IMG/VR virus record: IMGVR_UViG_3300027749_002876
Location: 124,001 to 188,000 of that record
Length of the DNA stretch: 64,000 nt
Strand: one strand, 5' to 3'
Below the pieces are notes generated by a model. That model had not been told where the DNA came from, did no database searches, and saw only the letters and a list, made by a program, of their open reading frames with translations. The translations under genes and the position numbers were made by a program. Within the stretch, counting starts at the first letter, position 1. Each line of letters opens with the position of its first letter. Below, piece by piece: positions 1,071 through 4,181 of this stretch.

Positions 1071-1157
1071 TGGAGGAAGATAACAGAATCGAACTGTCAC
1101 CGTGTAAACAGTGGGACGGTTTTCAAGACCGTGTCCGCGCCATGCAGCCTATCTTCC
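1071..1157 (-). tRNA. tRNA-Ser(TGA), probable 8/4 cloverleaf
   Basis: ACGGT-CTTGAAA-ACCGT arm, long variable arm, GGAAGATA/TATCTTCC 8-bp acceptor plus 4-bp T-stem. Confidence 0.88.
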
Positions 1158-1159
1158 TA

Positions 1160-1345
1160 TTATGCTTTTTTATCTACTTGATGATTACTATGTGTAGGTT
1201 CTAATTTACCTACTTTATCATATAGATACTGTACAACTTCTAAGTATTGTTTATTAGTTGCAGGATCTTGTAATGTTTTATAAACTGTTGTACGATATTG
1301 ATGATTGGTAATATCGTTTACCGCTGATATAGTTTGAATTATCAT
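1160..1345 (-). CDS. hypothetical protein (61 aa; start moved to MIIQT)
   Basis: ORF just downstream of the ATAAATA motif. Confidence 0.6.
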   Translation of the reverse strand: MIIQTISAVNDITNHQYRTTVYKTLQDPATNKQYLEVVQYLYDKVGKLEPTHSNHQVDKKA

Positions 1346-1352
1346 AATGTAT

Positions 1353-1370
1353 GTATTTATTAATAAATAC
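1353..1370. promoter_or_regulatory. palindromic back-to-back late-promoter motifs GTATTTATTAATAAATAC
   Basis: Perfect 18-bp palindrome giving ATAAATA on both strands between two divergent ORFs; resembles T4 late TATAAATA. Confidence 0.6.
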
Positions 1371-1373
1371 AGT

Positions 1374-1925
1374 ATGATACTCACAACAACTCCAATTAAG
1401 CAACATACTCAGTTAGTACATTTAGATATGCCATACACATATGAAGAAGTTTTAAATGAGCTAAACACATATGAGTTTAATGAAATTCATCCTTATCGTT
1501 ATAATTCTGCAATAACCACCAAAATTCTTAGTGAAATAAGACAACTAATAGTTGACTACTCTTTTATAGATAAATTTTATGAAATAAAAGATTTTCAAAA
1601 GTTGTGGAATAATGTATCTAAGGAAGAACTTAAAAAAAAATGTAAGTTCGATTGTTCTTTACATCTTGATAAACCTAAATTTTCTCTTACACCCCACCTT
1701 GATAGTAGACAAATTGTAATAGTTGGGATGATTTTCTTGAACCCAGTGAATGATATTAAACAAAACTCTGTACTATATGATACAGAAAATATGCTGAATC
1801 CACAATATGTACCTTCATCATTTGGAGAAGGATGGGTTATGGCTAATGCACATAACACATGGCACTCAGGTGGAAACTCATCTGACTATGATAGATATAG
1901 TATATTGTTCACCTATACCATATAG
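1374..1925 (+). CDS. 2OG-Fe(II) oxygenase-like protein
   Basis: HxD (PHLD)...H (TWHSG)...RYS motif pattern. Confidence 0.7.
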   Translation: MILTTTPIKQHTQLVHLDMPYTYEEVLNELNTYEFNEIHPYRYNSAITTKILSEIRQLIVDYSFIDKFYEIKDFQKLWNNVSKEELKKKCKFDCSLHLDKPKFSLTPHLDSRQIVIVGMIFLNPVNDIKQNSVLYDTENMLNPQYVPSSFGEGWVMANAHNTWHSGGNSSDYDRYSILFTYTI

Positions 1926-1945
1926 ATATTTATACTATCATGATT

Positions 1946-2022
1946 ACAATGTAAATTGGATTTGAACCAACATTTCCAGGACAAGACGCCGGGTTTCCTA
2001 GCTATTTAGAAGATTACATTGT
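1946..2022 (-). pseudogene. degenerate tRNA-like element
   Basis: 9-bp closing stem ACAATGTAA/TTACATTGT, intact T arm GTTGG-TTCAAAT-CCAAT, D-like arm, irregular anticodon arm, no CCA. Confidence 0.55.
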
Positions 2023-2110
2023 TACCATATAGAAACACACTGGCTTGCAAGACTCCTACTAACCTTTCGATAGATGTCGCAGTTAGTATTCAATGTGTTT
2101 TTATATGGTA
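2023..2110 (-). other. long stem-loop pairing with the 3' ACCA end of tRNA-Lys(TTT)
   Basis: TACCATATAAAAACACATTG...CAGTGTGTTTCTATATGGTA, ~20 bp. Confidence 0.6.
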
Positions 2111-2179
2111 GGGGTGTTCGGGAACGATCCGAATTTTACCGGTTAAAAGCCGGTTACTTCACCTTAAAGTTTCACCCCC
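2106..2179 (-). tRNA. tRNA-Lys(TTT), non-canonical A8/U14 and A54/U58
   Basis: ACCGG-CTTTTAA-CCGGT arm, T-loop ATCGTTC, CCA. Confidence 0.88.
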
Positions 2180-2182
2180 ATA

Positions 2183-2256
2183 TGGTCCCACACCACGGTA
2201 ACGATCCGTGTTTTACCGGTTAAGAGCCGGTTACATCACCTTAATGTTTGTGAGGG
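2183..2256 (-). tRNA. tRNA-Lys(CTT), non-canonical A8/U14 and A54/U58
   Basis: ACCGG-CTCTTAA-CCGGT arm, T-loop ATCGTTA, CCA. Confidence 0.88.
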
Positions 2257-2319
2257 ATGGATTCGTAAATATTTTCTTTTACGTGCCATCCAGGACCATA
2301 CGGGGGTCTAAGATGACAC
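2255..2319 (-). promoter_or_regulatory. putative two-state RNA switch between the MKRSGKR leader and tRNA-Lys(CTT)
   Basis: GTGTCATC/GATGGCAC stem excludes the GGATGG/CCATCC stem that pairs with tRNA nt -4..+2. Confidence 0.6.
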
Positions 2320-2342
2320 TATCGTTTACCTGAACGTTTCAT
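2319..2342 (-). CDS. leader peptide MKRSGKR
   Basis: AAGGAGA SD 5 nt upstream of ATG AAA CGT TCA GGT AAA CGA TAG. Confidence 0.65.
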   Translation of the reverse strand: MKRSGKR

Positions 2343-2363
2343 GTCGTTCTCCTTTTAAAAATT

Positions 2364-2526: not shown

Positions 2527-2601
2527 ATTCTATAACACACTGAATGCCTTTTCCTTGCGTCAGGGGTAAGGGGCAGTGTTCGTCAATGTATTATAGAATG
2601 C
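2525..2601 (-). other. long stem-loop abutting the 5' end of tRNA-Arg
   Basis: GCATTCTATAATACATTGA...TCAGTGTGTTATAGAATGC, 19 bp, with G-U pairs only on the minus strand. Confidence 0.6.
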
Positions 2602-2721
2602 CGTGTATTGCTACACAACATGATAGGGTTGATACCCTATCCAGTAGTCTTACTAACATGTTGTCTCCATGTTTTCATGTATACTGTCCGCCCATTCTAT
2701 ACATTTTGCGCTGTATTACGG
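2601..2721 (-). ncRNA. candidate multi-branched structured RNA in the tRNA operon leader
   Basis: ACAACATG/CATGTTGT closing a 3-way junction with TTAGTA/TACTGG and ATAGGGT/ACCCTAT; ATGTATA/TATACAT; CCGT/ACGG ends. Confidence 0.45.
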
Positions 2722-2747
2722 CTCTCGTTGCCTATTCACGCTGTCTA

Positions 2748-2894
2748 TCAGTTTACCTTATACAGGATCTGATAGACCTTTGCACGTTGTAACTTGTTAG
2801 CTATCAACTGTGCTAGTTGTTCCTTTGTCAAAACATGATTGCTAAACCAATCACGCTTTGTTTCAGAAGTTTTGTATTGTATCTCTTTATCCAT
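2748..2894 (-). CDS. possible small protein MDKEIQYKTSETKRDWFSNHVLTKEQLAQLIANKLQRAKVYQILYKVN (48 aa)
   Basis: Open frame just after the terminator; its start lies within the spacer of promoter P2, so it is uncertain. Confidence 0.3.
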   Translation of the reverse strand: MDKEIQYKTSETKRDWFSNHVLTKEQLAQLIANKLQRAKVYQILYKVN

Positions 2895-2917: not shown

Positions 2918-2952
2918 AAAACAAAAAACCTGAGAGTCTTGCGATTCCCAGG
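2918..2952 (-). terminator. intrinsic terminator (attenuator) upstream of the tRNA cluster
   Basis: CCTGGGAATC-GCAA-GACTCTCAGG followed by TTTTTTGTTTT. Confidence 0.8.
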
Positions 2953-3000
2953 GTCTTGATAAATTTAGTTATAATGTTAACTTGTTACCTAGTCCCCGGG
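2947..3000 (-). promoter_or_regulatory. antiterminator hairpin overlapping the leader stop codon and the terminator 5' arm
   Basis: CCCGGGG/CCCTGGG, CT/AG, GGTAA/TTATC, AGTTA/TAACT stacked stems. Confidence 0.7.
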
Positions 3001-3122
3001 CTTCTCTCTTGGTTATCATTTGAGCCGCGAATACTTGTTGGATATGCTGGTACAAAGGATACACTGGCTATCGTTAGCCACTGTCCGGTATGTTTCAGCA
3101 TGTTACAAGTTTTATTCATCAT
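2985..3122 (-). CDS. leader peptide MMNKTCNMLKHTGQWLTIASVSFVPAYPTSIRGSNDNQERSPGTR (45 aa, all 20 amino acids)
   Basis: Translated by hand; 36 distinct codons; ends in the antiterminator stem; CTAAATA late-like motif 7 nt upstream. Confidence 0.7.
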   Translation of the reverse strand: MMNKTCNMLKHTGQWLTIASVSFVPAYPTSIRGSNDNQERSPGTR

Positions 3123-3197
3123 AGTCTTTTATTTAGTCCTGGTTGTAAATTAGTGTAATTAACATATGTTTTTACACCTTTTTTCAATTCATGCTGA

Positions 3198-3226
3198 AGT
3201 ATAGCATAGATTGGAATTAATGTCAA
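3198..3226 (-). promoter_or_regulatory. sigma70-type promoter P1 (TTGACA-17-TATACT, extended -10 TG)
   Basis: Near-perfect consensus in an intergenic region upstream of the leader peptide. Confidence 0.8.
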
Positions 3227-3248
3227 CTTCTTTTTTAGGCGGTTTACC

Positions 3249-4181
3249 CTAAACGTTTAGACCTAAACGTTTAGAGATGTGTCTTTGCACCCTGGCATCA
3301 GTGTTTTTATAGAAAGAAATCAATTCTTGTATTGGTATTATGATATGATGTTTGTCATATCTAACTTTATTAAGCAATGAATCGTTTTCTATCCAATCTA
3401 TTTTTTCAAATCCTGTCAATTTTGGAAAGTATAATAATTCATCTCTCCAATACTTAGCCAAGAAGAAAGGTTTAACATAATACTCGTATCTTAGCACGTG
3501 GGGTATTTTTTTATGTTCTTGATTAGCTGCCTTTTCCATAATCAACCCGTTATCTTCAAAATATTCCCAACTGTGCAGGAACTGTTCAACTAGAGGATCT
3601 GATATGCAACTAAGCCACAACTCACTGGTGTCACCAAATATTACAATTTTACCTGATCGGTTTTCTATAGCAGTCAATGCTCTATGTCTGGATACGTCAG
3701 GATCAAACCAACCATAATAAACATAATGTAATTTTTTTCTAAGCAACAACCATGGGGTTGACATACATTGCACTATATCATAATCATTTGGTAATTCTTT
3801 AACAAATAAATGTTGTAATGCGTGGTTAGGATGAACATCTGTTTGTTGCGCTATGTGTTCTATTTCTTCTCTTCGGGTATTTGGATTAATGTTGATTACG
3901 TTAGTCTTAAAACCATACTTTTTTTCTAAAAGTTTTACATTTTCGTATTCAGTTTCATTATAGCCGTCGACTCGTAGAAATGAGCATTCTACTGGAATGT
4001 CTTGAGTCTTTAGACTATGAAGTACTAATTGACTATCTAATCCACTACTTAAACAAAGCATCAATTTATCAGACGCAATTTCTCTAGCACGCCTGTCAAA
4101 TTCTTCTCTATAGTTACCAATTTTTCTATTACTACTAGTGATATCTATATAGAACTTATAATCGTCAAATCCATATATCAT
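3249..4181 (-). CDS. PP-loop (adenine nucleotide alpha-hydrolase-like) protein
   Basis: LCLSSGLDS motif near the N-terminus; C-terminal KLTGFE shared with paralogs. Confidence 0.7.
   Translation of the reverse strand: MIYGFDDYKFYIDITSSNRKIGNYREEFDRRAREIASDKLMLCLSSGLDSQLVLHSLKTQDIPVECSFLRVDGYNETEYENVKLLEKKYGFKTNVININPNTRREEIEHIAQQTDVHPNHALQHLFVKELPNDYDIVQCMSTPWLLLRKKLHYVYYGWFDPDVSRHRALTAIENRSGKIVIFGDTSELWLSCISDPLVEQFLHSWEYFEDNGLIMEKAANQEHKKIPHVLRYEYYVKPFFLAKYWRDELLYFPKLTGFEKIDWIENDSLLNKVRYDKHHIIIPIQELISFYKNTDARVQRHISKRLGLNV

Follow-up and report, generated by a model that had tools for sequence, protein, structure and literature searches.

Two lysine tRNA genes of a 525-kb freshwater phage carry two of the most conserved tertiary contacts of tRNA, the 8-14 and 54-58 pairs, in inverted form. 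They belong to a large family that is spread across phages of many bacterial groups and often missed by gene finders, and they are preceded by a small lysine-codon leader that looks like a feedback switch. The initial annotation had noticed from the sequence alone that both genes read A8/U14 and A54/U58, and this observation was confirmed. We analyzed a window of 64,000 nt (positions 124,001 to 188,000 of IMG/VR record IMGVR_UViG_3300027749_002876), in which ARAGORN called a tRNA-Lys(UUU) and a tRNA-Lys(CUU) gene on the minus strand, both with an encoded CCA (Table 1). The Rfam alignment gave the same register for the UUU gene. In the whole 524,565-bp genome, 53 of the 56 tRNAs called by ARAGORN have U8/A14 and T54/A58, with a TTCRA-type T loop, and only these two genes and one tRNA-Asp(GUC) at genome positions 423201-423275 carry both swaps. 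The two lysine genes are identical at 36/39 positions over nt 8 to 48 but at only 6/24 over the acceptor and T stems. They therefore share one central cassette and do not constitute independent cases.

Table 1. Features of the tRNA-Lys locus and its leader (window coordinates)
Positions	Strand	Feature	Details
2106-2179	-	tRNA-Lys(UUU)	74 nt with encoded CCA; acceptor strands GGGGGTG and CACCCCT with a G1-U72 pair; A8 A9; D stem ACTT/AAGT; D loop UAAGGUG; anticodon stem ACCGG/CCGGT, loop CTTTTAA; 4-nt variable loop AAAA; T stem TTCGG/CCGAA; T loop AUCGUUC; A73
2183-2256	-	tRNA-Lys(CUU)	74 nt with encoded CCA; acceptor strands CCCTCAC and GTGTGGG with a U4-U69 mismatch (also in the near-identical CCCTCAC-type copies); A8 A9; D stem ACAT/ATGT; central cassette as in the UUU gene; anticodon loop CTCTTAA; T stem CACGG/CCGTG; T loop AUCGUUA; A73
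2166-2172	-	Inverted 8-14 tertiary pair, tRNA-Lys(UUU)	A8 at 2172, U14 at 2166
2124-2128	-	Inverted 54-58 T-loop pair, tRNA-Lys(UUU)	A54 at 2128, U58 at 2124
2243-2249	-	A8 to U14, tRNA-Lys(CUU)	A8 at 2249, U14 at 2243
2201-2205	-	A54 to U58, tRNA-Lys(CUU)	A54 at 2205, U58 at 2201
2257-2354	-	Conserved leader directly upstream of the tRNA genes	
2349-2354	-	Shine-Dalgarno (SD) sequence of the leader ORF	AAGGAG
2319-2342	-	Leader mini-ORF	ATG AAA CGT TCA GGT AAA CGA TAG (MKRSGKR*)
2283-2319	-	37-nt hairpin	Begins with the G of the leader's TAG stop; conserved loop (CCCGUAUGG); covered by metatranscriptome contigs
2255-2264	-	Leader/tRNA junction	CCATCC (2260-2255, including tRNA nt 1-2) can pair with the 3' arm of the hairpin, GGATGG (2291-2286)
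1946-2021	-	Degenerate tRNA-like gene, probably a pseudo-tRNA	Lys-CUU-like only at relaxed ARAGORN settings; 35 bits on RF00005; no CCA; flawed anticodon stem; found only in the closest relative, designated L030

Both genes fold into a class I cloverleaf with acceptor, D, anticodon, and T stems of 7, 4, 5, and 5 bp. They display a 7-nt anticodon loop with U33, the anticodon UUU or CUU, and A37, as well as discriminator A73, G53-C61, and the elbow nucleotides G18, G19, U55, and C56. The U8-A14 and T54-A58 pairs are absent from both. Compared with canonical bacterial and phage elongator tRNA-Lys (Rfam RF00005), they also differ in A15-A48, A46, G21, the lack of nucleotides 17 and 47, and an A at position 16. 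The initial annotation had further suggested that such genes may score poorly in tRNA scanners, and this holds: RF00005 scored the UUU gene with 47.4 bits but the CUU gene with 22.4 bits, below the gathering score of 29. ARAGORN missed 25 of 32 relatives with G54-G58, and five GenBank phage records leave such genes unannotated. Relaxed ARAGORN settings added only the degenerate tRNA-like gene and obvious false positives.

To find relatives, we first compared the region with cultured phages by megablast, which returned nothing. Motif searches were more productive. The exact anticodon arm was found in 31 IMG/VR contigs and the D-arm signature in at least 119 viral contigs. Altogether, the signature defines at least 169 copies (100 unique) in IMG/VR contigs and in cultured phages of Synechococcus, Leptolyngbya, Curtobacterium, and Xanthomonas. 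The cultured phages carrying it are BUCT-ZZ01, Yappy, X1, and Lbo-JY46, while RsoM2USA carries a close variant with an 8-nt D loop and RSP15 a double-swapped tRNA-Asp. In contrast, 185,579 species genomes (596 Gb of cellular sequence) yielded only 22 hits, most of which are phage-like arrays. Literature searches on A54-U58, A8-U14, and related terms found no tRNA paper, although they covered open-access papers only and the absence is therefore weak evidence.

Among the 100 unique members, the stems are 93 to 100% paired, with several pair types at most positions, and A73 is present in 99/100. G53-C61 is found in 100/100, and U55 and C56 hold in most but not all T loops. The D loop UAAGGUG, including G18 and G19, is fixed by the search signature, but A15, A46, A48, and the 4-nt variable loop are invariant. 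The 10-25/45 triple covaries (GC-G 71, AU-A 24), and positions 54/58 are restricted to A-U (47), G-G (29), U-A (12), A-A (3), C-A (2), and G-C (2), although these statistics treat related sequences as independent. An identical 74-nt gene occurs in 13 loci whose flanks are only 59 to 79% identical. The evidence against chance comes from relatives: in 1,672 unique tRNAs from phage arrays outside the signature family, A54 and U58 co-occur 68 times (A54 alone 31, U58 alone 1), and A8 and U14 co-occur 46 times, against about 5 expected. Each swap also occurs alone in many other phage tRNAs, including A8/U14 in T5 tRNA-Thr.

Next, we asked whether the design is compatible with translation. Five Actinomycetota genomes of 2.7 to 3.9 Mb carry the A8/U14 form, and it is their only hit to a generic tRNA-Lys(UUU) pattern; in the two loci examined, the neighbors are housekeeping genes. 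The design should therefore support translation. In 112 viral loci, the family member is usually the only Lys tRNA with that anticodon. Only 4 of the 112 loci show a second one, which ruled out the idea that a phage keeps a canonical and an inverted tRNA for the same codon as bet hedging. The genome studied here, with its two mirrored arrays, is a special case: it keeps a canonical tRNA-Lys(UUU) at genome positions 417128-417204, while the CUU gene is its only tRNA-Lys(CUU). Searches of the phage for a class IIb synthetase (PF00152) and a CCA-adding enzyme (PF01743) found neither, and a Pfam search of ten neighboring ORFs gave no usable hit. Freshwater metatranscriptome contigs matched the Lys-UUU gene exactly or with a compensated stem change, while the flanking stretches 1073-2010 and 2949-4000 had zero depth. 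These are assembled contigs from relatives, which show presence in RNA libraries but prove neither transcription nor maturation.

Directly upstream of the genes lies the conserved leader, which comprises an SD, an ORF of 6 to 8 codons, and a hairpin. Mini-ORFs with an SD precede 66/193 Lys tRNAs, against 15% or less for other tRNAs. Those upstream of non-Lys tRNAs are mostly misread upstream tRNA genes, such as MQQIANLS from a Ser anticodon arm, and were discarded. The ATG, AAR at codon 2, AAR at the second-to-last sense codon, and TAG are invariant. The hairpin shows compensatory pairs, and its 3' arm can alternatively pair with the 5' end of the tRNA. For this alternative helix, 75% of cells are paired, against 65.5 ± 1.5 in shuffles and 49% or less when slid, and pairing with a variant's own junction gave a dG of -10.05 compared to -6.9 for the junctions of other variants (0/5000 permutations). 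As in leader-peptide attenuators of the trp, his, and pheST type, a short SD-led ORF contains codons for the regulated amino acid, and its end overlaps one arm of mutually exclusive helices. However, the product is a tRNA instead of an enzyme, and the hairpin is followed by GUAAAAGAAAAUAUUUAC without a terminator U-run, so the leader is not a classical attenuator. The alternative helix would sequester the tRNA 5' end and RNase P site, so control would act on folding or processing. The leader precedes Lys tRNAs of every core type and thus says nothing about the inversion itself. A literature search for leader peptides before tRNA genes found nothing in the open-access papers covered.

With moderate confidence, we interpret the two genes as working elongator tRNAs for lysine from a lineage carried mainly by phages, in which the L-shaped core is held by a complete but different set of tertiary contacts. 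In this view, A8-U14 replaces U8-A14, A15-A48 replaces the R15-Y48 pair, U13-A22 pairs with A46, R10-Y25 with a covarying R45, and A26 with R44, while G18/G19 still meet U55/C56. A54-U58 replaces T54-A58, and relatives instead have G54-G58 or the ordinary U54-A58. Whereas the sequence pattern, its conservation, the covariation, and the distribution were demonstrated directly, we infer from sequence that the tRNAs are transcribed with the array, processed, charged by the host lysyl-tRNA synthetase, and used on the ribosome, since the anticodon and A73 are intact and the phage encodes no class IIb synthetase. The geometry of the swapped pairs is likewise inferred. The swaps remove nearly all the universal body-modification sites known from E. 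coli tRNA-Lys (s4U8, D16/17, m7G46, acp3U47, m5U54, and m1A58 in other bacteria) and change the D-loop and T-loop nucleotides that tRNA-binding proteins read. The most likely benefit, in our opinion, would be to insulate lysine decoding from host enzymes that act on canonical tRNA-Lys, defense tRNases first among them, but this last step is tentative and less likely than not. The leader most likely couples the output of mature tRNA-Lys to how well ribosomes decode lysine codons: a ribosome that reaches the stop codon would open the hairpin, and the freed arm would trap the tRNA 5' end, while a ribosome stalled at a Lys codon would leave the hairpin closed and the tRNA free to fold.

The interpretation offered by the initial annotation, i.e., selection rather than decay and a core remodeled to evade tRNA-Lys-targeting nucleases or toxins, was only partly supported. 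Selection is supported, but not by the argument of swaps in two genes, which count as one event; the support comes from the compensated stems, A73, and covariation of the 100 unique members, the identical genes in diverged flanks, and the five bacterial genomes. Escape from the anticodon nucleases PrrC, RloC, and AriB as the reason for the design is plausible but unlikely in this specific form. tRNA-Lys(UUU) is the main target of PrrC and AriB, and phage tRNA-Lys rescues infection (PMC11464382, PMC11555353, PMC12409363), and the genes, which lie in a phage tRNA array, are phage-encoded isoacceptors of a tRNA known to be cut by defense nucleases. AriB needs D-loop U16 and other distal contacts (PMC12409363). 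None of the 100 members has U39-C40-A41 and the family lacks U16/U17, but the anticodon loop is canonical, and no host is assigned to this phage for comparison. T5 tRNA-Thr(UGU), one of three T5 tRNAs that together are sufficient to inhibit PARIS defense, shares the A8 A9/U14/G21 D-arm design. However, T5 tRNA-Lys, the proven AriB-resistant tRNA, which we had expected to belong to the family, has a canonical core. Published escapes from AriB and OLD map to the anticodon stem plus D-loop U16 (PMC12409363, PMC12445682), and the loop CUUUUAA, on which anticodon nucleases act, is unchanged, so PrrC-type recognition is not obviously avoided. Moreover, the same swaps occur in Asp, Thr, Pro, Gly, His, Ile, Asn, and other phage tRNAs, including tRNAs with no known nuclease link, and the 8-14 swap is present in cellular tRNA-Lys, where no phage-defense argument applies. 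Defense-evading phage tRNAs of the T5 type are likewise copies of the tRNAs that defense nucleases cut and differ from host tRNAs at nuclease contact points; cleavage data exist for no core-inverted tRNA. Mycobacteriophage tRNAs with anticodon-loop changes have also been proposed to evade tRNA-targeting host systems (eLife 2023, PMC10264068). That work concerns the anticodon loop only and mentions neither the D loop nor the T loop, although Mycobacterium phage Bonray tRNA-Lys(CUU) has the A54-U58 T loop. Eukaryotic initiator tRNAs (A54, A60) are a natural class with A at position 54. A54-A58 also occurs here (31 phage tRNAs and cellular ATCCATA members), but initiators keep A58, whereas here 58 becomes U, which inverts the pair, and these tRNAs are elongators.

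Neutral compensated drift is a possible, though less favored, alternative. Phage tRNA genes are backed up by host tRNAs and evolve fast, and the inverted states could be frozen accidents reached through tolerated intermediates (U-A to A-A to A-U; U-A to U-U or A-A to A-U). Such intermediates are present in phage arrays (A54-A58 31, A8-A14 30, U8-U14 52), the swaps are scattered over at least 16 isoacceptors and occur independently of each other, and cellular members exist, so drift is sufficient to explain the pattern. Drift alone, however, does not predict the persistence of the family across phages of Cyanobacteria, Actinomycetota, and Proteobacteria, its invariant core positions, the identical genes in diverged flanks, or the excess of viral over cellular hits. 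Similarly tentative is a structural alternative in which 54-58 is an ordinary Watson-Crick pair extending the T stem over a 3-nt loop with 59-60 bulged, and U14 may pair with G21 to extend the D stem rather than with A8. The only 54/58 states with a pyrimidine at 58 are A-U and G-C, both Watson-Crick complementary, and the minimum-free-energy fold extends the D stem through U14-G21 and A15-U20. Nevertheless, G18, G19, U55, C56, and R57 stay conserved, as expected for a normal elbow. Position 21 is G, A, C, or U in different A8/U14 tRNAs, so 14-21 does not covary, whereas A8 goes with U14 in at least 13 anticodon classes, and G54-G58 and A54-A58 fit a Hoogsteen-type pair but not a Watson-Crick pair.

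Three other explanations appear very unlikely. A decoy that titrates a host factor would be compatible with the additional canonical tRNA-Lys(UUU) of the phage but not readily with the role of the design as the only tRNA-Lys(UUU) found in five bacterial genomes, with its usual status as the only Lys tRNA of its anticodon in phage loci, with the CUU gene being the phage's only one, or with the conserved identity elements, CCA, and stems. Protection from near-UV damage, in which A8 cannot become s4U8 and form the 8-13 photo-crosslink that blocks tRNA charging in sunlit habitats, would fit the many carriers from lakes, cyanobacteria, and plant-associated bacteria. It explains neither the 54-58 swap nor why only a few tRNAs per phage carry A8, and T5 (E. 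coli) and soil phages also carry A8 tRNAs. Pseudogenes or assembly artifacts, suggested by the low Rfam score of the CUU gene and the degenerate neighbor, are contradicted by the conservation and covariation and by the appearance of the same sequence in many independent metagenomes and metatranscriptomes. A further reading is speculative and unlikely on present evidence, namely, that many phages carry a self-contained emergency module for lysine decoding. It would pair a tRNA-Lys whose inverted, modification-free core is invisible to host enzymes recognizing canonical tRNA-Lys with a translated leader that releases the tRNA 5' end for maturation only when ribosomes stall for lack of Lys-tRNA, for example, after attack by PrrC, RloC, or PARIS. 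This would be the first leader-peptide switch known to control a tRNA and the first natural tRNA class with both universal reverse-Hoogsteen pairs inverted.

U8-A14 and T54-A58 are treated as near-universal rules of tRNA architecture and are built into gene finders, covariance models, and tRNA engineering. Because the inverted genes are underannotated, phage tRNA inventories and codon-supply analyses are biased. Tractable hosts exist for studying whether core remodeling protects against tRNA-targeting immunity (S. elongatus PCC 7942 with BUCT-ZZ01, M. smegmatis with Bonray, and E. coli with T5 tRNA-Thr), and the covariation provides a ready series of variants (U-A, A-A, G-G, and A-U) for structural study. 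A natural, widespread, and apparently translation-competent family that inverts both pairs suggests that the rules have a second solution, and if the Lys-codon leader works as proposed, it would be a new way of regulating a tRNA.

The window has a G+C content of 36.7% and uses the standard code, with TAA, TGA and TAG all serving as stops. It belongs to a 524,565-bp IMG/VR virus record that was judged complete, and DNA matching the first 6 kb was found in freshwater and lake metagenomes. ARAGORN identified 56 tRNA genes in the genome, all ending in CCA. These genes lie in two arrays with the same gene order in inverted orientation, and the window holds the end of the first array, in which the two tRNA-Lys genes are located. 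The positions of the features are collected in the following table.

Coordinates of the tRNA genes, the leader element and neighboring features
Feature	Coordinate system	Position	Strand
Window	genome	124001-188000	
First tRNA array	genome	115.3-126.5 kb	minus
Second tRNA array	genome	417.0-426.6 kb	plus
tRNA-Lys(UUU), A8/U14 and A54/U58	window	2106-2179	minus
tRNA-Lys(CUU), A8/U14 and A54/U58	window	2183-2256	minus
tRNA-Asp(GUC) with both swaps, second array	genome	423201-423275	
Canonical tRNA-Lys(UUU)	genome	417128-417204	
Canonical tRNA-Asp	genome	120876-120950	
tRNA-Tyr(GUA) with A8 A9 and C14, outside the window	genome	423111-423192	plus
tRNA-Ser(UGA) with A8 and C14	window	1071-1157	minus
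Degenerate tRNA-like gene	window	1946-2021	minus
Conserved leader element	window	2257-2354	minus
Leader SD (AAGGAG)	window	2354-2349	minus
Leader mini-ORF	window	2342-2319	minus
Leader hairpin, 37 nt	window	2319-2283	minus
3' arm of the hairpin (GGATGG)	window	2291-2286	minus
Leader/tRNA junction (CCATCC, including tRNA nt 1-2)	window	2260-2255	minus
High metatranscriptome depth, between tRNA-Leu and tRNA-Lys(CUU)	window	2271-2328	
Zero metatranscriptome depth	window	1073-2010 and 2949-4000	
Conserved stretch matched by metatranscriptome contigs	window	2680-2750	
82-aa ORF enclosing this stretch	window	2544-2792	plus

The initial annotation, which had described two inverted tertiary pairs in both tRNA-Lys genes, was correct in this observation. 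Both genes read A8 A9, a 4-bp D stem, D loop UAAGGUG (U14), A26, a 4-nt variable loop AAAA and T loop AUCGUU(C/A) (A54, U58), together with ordinary anticodon loops, A73 and CCA. The Rfam alignment gave the same register for the UUU gene. In contrast, 53 of the 56 genes have U8 and a TTCRA T loop, and the only other gene with both swaps is the tRNA-Asp(GUC) of the second array. The inverted-core and canonical versions of Lys-UUU and Asp-GUC are distributed in a complementary way between the two arrays. The two Lys genes are 36/39 identical over nt 8-48 but only 6/24 over the acceptor and T stems. They share one central cassette and thus represent one evolutionary event, not two. Further unusual genes were observed in the genome. 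The tRNA-Tyr(GUA) was missed by ARAGORN and scored 35.4 bits with RF00005. The best Rfam match of the tRNA-Ser(UGA) was tRNA-Sec (38 bits, below threshold); this gene can be drawn with an 8-bp acceptor and a 4-bp T stem, and the same gene occurs in locus L001 and in locus L030, the closest relative. The degenerate tRNA-like gene (RF00005, 35 bits) was called by ARAGORN only at relaxed settings, as Lys-CUU-like; it has no CCA and a flawed anticodon stem, and among the retrieved loci it was found only in L030.

Next, the distribution of these tRNAs was investigated. The exact anticodon arm occurs in 31 IMG/VR contigs. A signature composed of the D arm plus the anticodon loop (AARCNTTAAGGTGANGYANNNNNCTYTTAA) occurs in at least 119 viral contigs, whereas it was found only 22 times in one genome for each of 185,579 prokaryote species. 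BLAST against cultured phages returned members, or close variants lacking one signature position, in Synechococcus phage BUCT-ZZ01, Curtobacterium phage Yappy, Xanthomonas phage X1, Leptolyngbya phage Lbo-JY46, Ralstonia phage RsoM2USA and a 595-kb uncultured phage. A double-swapped tRNA-Asp occurs in Ralstonia phage RSP15. In five deposited records (GenBank ON615601, OQ427096, PP438436, MG752970 and LC121084), the inverted-core tRNA-Lys or tRNA-Asp gene is not annotated as a tRNA, and in ON615601 it is overlapped by a "hypothetical protein" CDS.

Extraction anchored on the signature yielded 169 copies and 100 unique sequences, which show that the family is under purifying selection as a tRNA. 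Every stem is 93-100% paired, with several pair types at most variable positions; acceptor pair 7, for example, is G-C 47, C-G 23, U-A 15 and A-U 13. A73 is present in 99/100 sequences, and A9, C11-G24, U13-A22, A15, A26, A46, A48 and G53-C61 are invariant. The 10-25/45 triple covaries, with G-C and G45 in 71 cases and A-U and A45 in 24. The identical 74-nt UUU gene occurs in 13 loci, and all but one of these have flanks only 59-79% identical to those of the window. Thus, a normal L-shaped core is kept, but with different letters.

The 54-58 pair covaries as well. Within the family, 54/58 is A-U 47, G-G 29, U-A 12, A-A 3, C-A 2 and G-C 2, and nothing else. Outside the family, 1,672 unique well-parsed tRNAs from the same phage arrays showed A54 with U58 68 times, A54 without U58 31 times (all A54-A58) and U58 without A54 once, while A8 with U14 occurred 46 times against about 5 expected. 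These counts treat related sequences as independent, so that the p-values are only descriptive; however, A54-U58 occurs in 16 anticodon classes and A8-U14 in 13. Each swap also occurs without the other. A54-U58 alone was found in His, Ile, Asn, Phe and Trp tRNAs and in Mycobacterium phage Bonray tRNA-Lys, and A8-U14 alone was found in other tRNA-Lys(CUU) lineages, in Pro, Thr and Gly tRNAs and in phage T5 tRNA-Thr(UGU). The latter has A8 A9 / U14 / G21, and T5 tRNA-Asp has G8 G9 / G14 (AY543070, 28667-28741 and 33578-33654). Therefore, noncanonical 8-14 pairs exist in a model phage whose tRNA-Thr is a PARIS rescue tRNA. Both sites show the same spectrum of states (U-A, A-A, G-G and A-U), as expected if a Hoogsteen-type pair is what is conserved. 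States with a purine at 58 fit the normal polarity, while A-U and the rare G-C require either the inverted polarity or a Watson-Crick pair, both of which are compatible with the sequences.

Most of the 22 genome hits lie in dense tRNA arrays typical of phage DNA binned into MAGs. Seven are lone or nearly lone chromosomal tRNA-Lys(UUU) genes without CCA in Actinomycetota MAGs, and in the two loci examined, the neighbors were a GGDEF/PAS sensor, glycosidases and Ada/AlkA. Five of these genomes were examined; they are 2.7-3.9 Mb in size and have 33-46 tRNA hits each. In each of them, this gene is the only match to a generic tRNA-Lys(UUU) pattern, although MAG incompleteness and the strictness of the pattern have to be considered. 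This indicates that the design should work in translation. Only 2 of 151 sampled genomes of that order have it. These cellular copies carry A8-U14 with G54-G58 or A54-A58 (T loops AUCCAUA or GUC(G/A)GUA), and in this sample the A54-U58 state is confined to phage-type contexts, apart from two loci with only 2-3 tRNAs. Neither a class IIb synthetase nor a CCA-adding enzyme was found in the phage, so host enzymes would have to serve these tRNAs. In 112 viral loci, the family member is usually the only Lys tRNA of its anticodon, which argues against a decoy role. Contigs from freshwater metatranscriptomes match the UUU gene exactly (contigs X25 and X31) or with a compensated anticodon-stem change (contig X26), while the depth is zero over two flanking stretches. 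This is consistent with expression in relatives but does not prove it. Contigs of three metatranscriptomes also match a further stretch, which is conserved at 84-100% in seven related loci and lies inside an 82-aa ORF without a Pfam hit.

Compared to E. coli tRNA-Lys, the sequence lacks U8, U16/U17, G46, U47 and U54, and also A58. Outside the anticodon loop, only U20 and U55 remain as usual modification sites. The body is therefore, as inferred from sequence, nearly free of sites for host modification, and it presents a different D-loop and T-loop surface. The initial annotation had proposed that the remodeled core evades nucleases or toxins that target tRNA-Lys. AriB of PARIS cuts E. coli tRNA-Lys(UUU), Thr(UGU) and Asn(GUU) at 40|41; cleavage needs U39, A41, D-loop U16 and further distal contacts, and the T5 versions of these three tRNAs neutralize PARIS (PMC12409363). 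Phage tRNA-Thr(UGU) resists P2 OLD through anticodon-stem changes (PMC12445682), and phage tRNA-Lys rescues from PrrC (PMC11555353). The absence of U16/U17 in the family, the absence of U39-C40-A41 in all 100 members and the A8/U14 design of T5 tRNA-Thr fit evasion. However, T5 tRNA-Lys has a canonical core, the anticodon loop of the family is canonical, the remodeling is not specific to Lys, and bacteria use the 8-14 swap themselves. Therefore, we tentatively keep, at less than even odds, evasion or, more broadly, insulation from host enzymes that read the canonical core as the most likely selective value, with neutral compensated drift as the main rival. The defence-evasion reading is plausible but unproven, and it is weakened in its Lys-specific form.

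Metatranscriptome depth was high upstream of tRNA-Lys(CUU), in a leader element of roughly 100 nt. It is conserved at 76-100% identity in more than 40 related loci and, in the loci checked, lies directly upstream of a Lys tRNA gene, whatever the core type of that gene. On the tRNA strand, it comprises an SD, the ORF ATG AAA CGT TCA GGT AAA CGA TAG, a hairpin beginning with the G of TAG, a small AU hairpin and the junction to the tRNA. Across 31-33 unique variants, the ATG, a Lys codon at position 2, a Lys codon at the second-to-last sense codon, one further codon and TAG are invariant, whereas the middle of the ORF (6-8 codons in total) varies in length, in frame. Examples are MKRAKR, MKRSGKR, MKRKSRKL and MKHSKR. 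SD-led mini-ORFs precede 66 of 193 Lys tRNAs, against 15% or less for other tRNAs, and those other cases are mostly misread upstream tRNA genes. The hairpin has compensatory pairs, and its 3' arm can instead pair with the leader/tRNA junction. This alternative helix is 75% paired, against 65.5+-1.5 in shuffles (0/500) and 49% or less when slid, and one pair splits A-U 11, U-A 11 and G-C 2. The duplex energy with a variant's own junction is -10.05 kcal/mol, against -6.9 with the junctions of other variants (0/5000 permutations). No U-run follows the hairpin, so this is not a classical terminator. No Rfam family matches the element, and no paper on such leaders was found in our literature search. 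A second, unrelated leader (AAAAGGAGATCTGTC ATG ACN AGT GAC AAG AGT GAT AAG ..., encoding M-x-S-D-K-S-D-K) was observed upstream of family tRNA-Lys(UUU) genes in about ten other loci. It has two Lys and two Asp codons and runs into the first 16-21 nt of the tRNA gene; in one frame, A8-A10 read as a Lys codon and U14-A16 as the stop.

The analysis itself establishes the sequence pattern, which is far from chance, and its conservation, covariation and distribution, whereas activity in translation, insulation from host enzymes and the operation of the leader are inferred. The genes can be regarded as members, inferred to be functional, of a widespread tRNA-Lys lineage, mainly carried by phages, with an alternative tertiary core that current tools underdetect and of which we found no description. 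The adjacent Lys-codon leader is an unexpected addition. In our view, a ribosome that decodes the Lys codons and reaches TAG would open the hairpin, and the freed arm would trap the tRNA 5' end, while a ribosome stalled at a Lys codon would leave the hairpin closed and the tRNA free to fold and be processed. Such a mechanism would constitute negative feedback on the tRNA-Lys supply.
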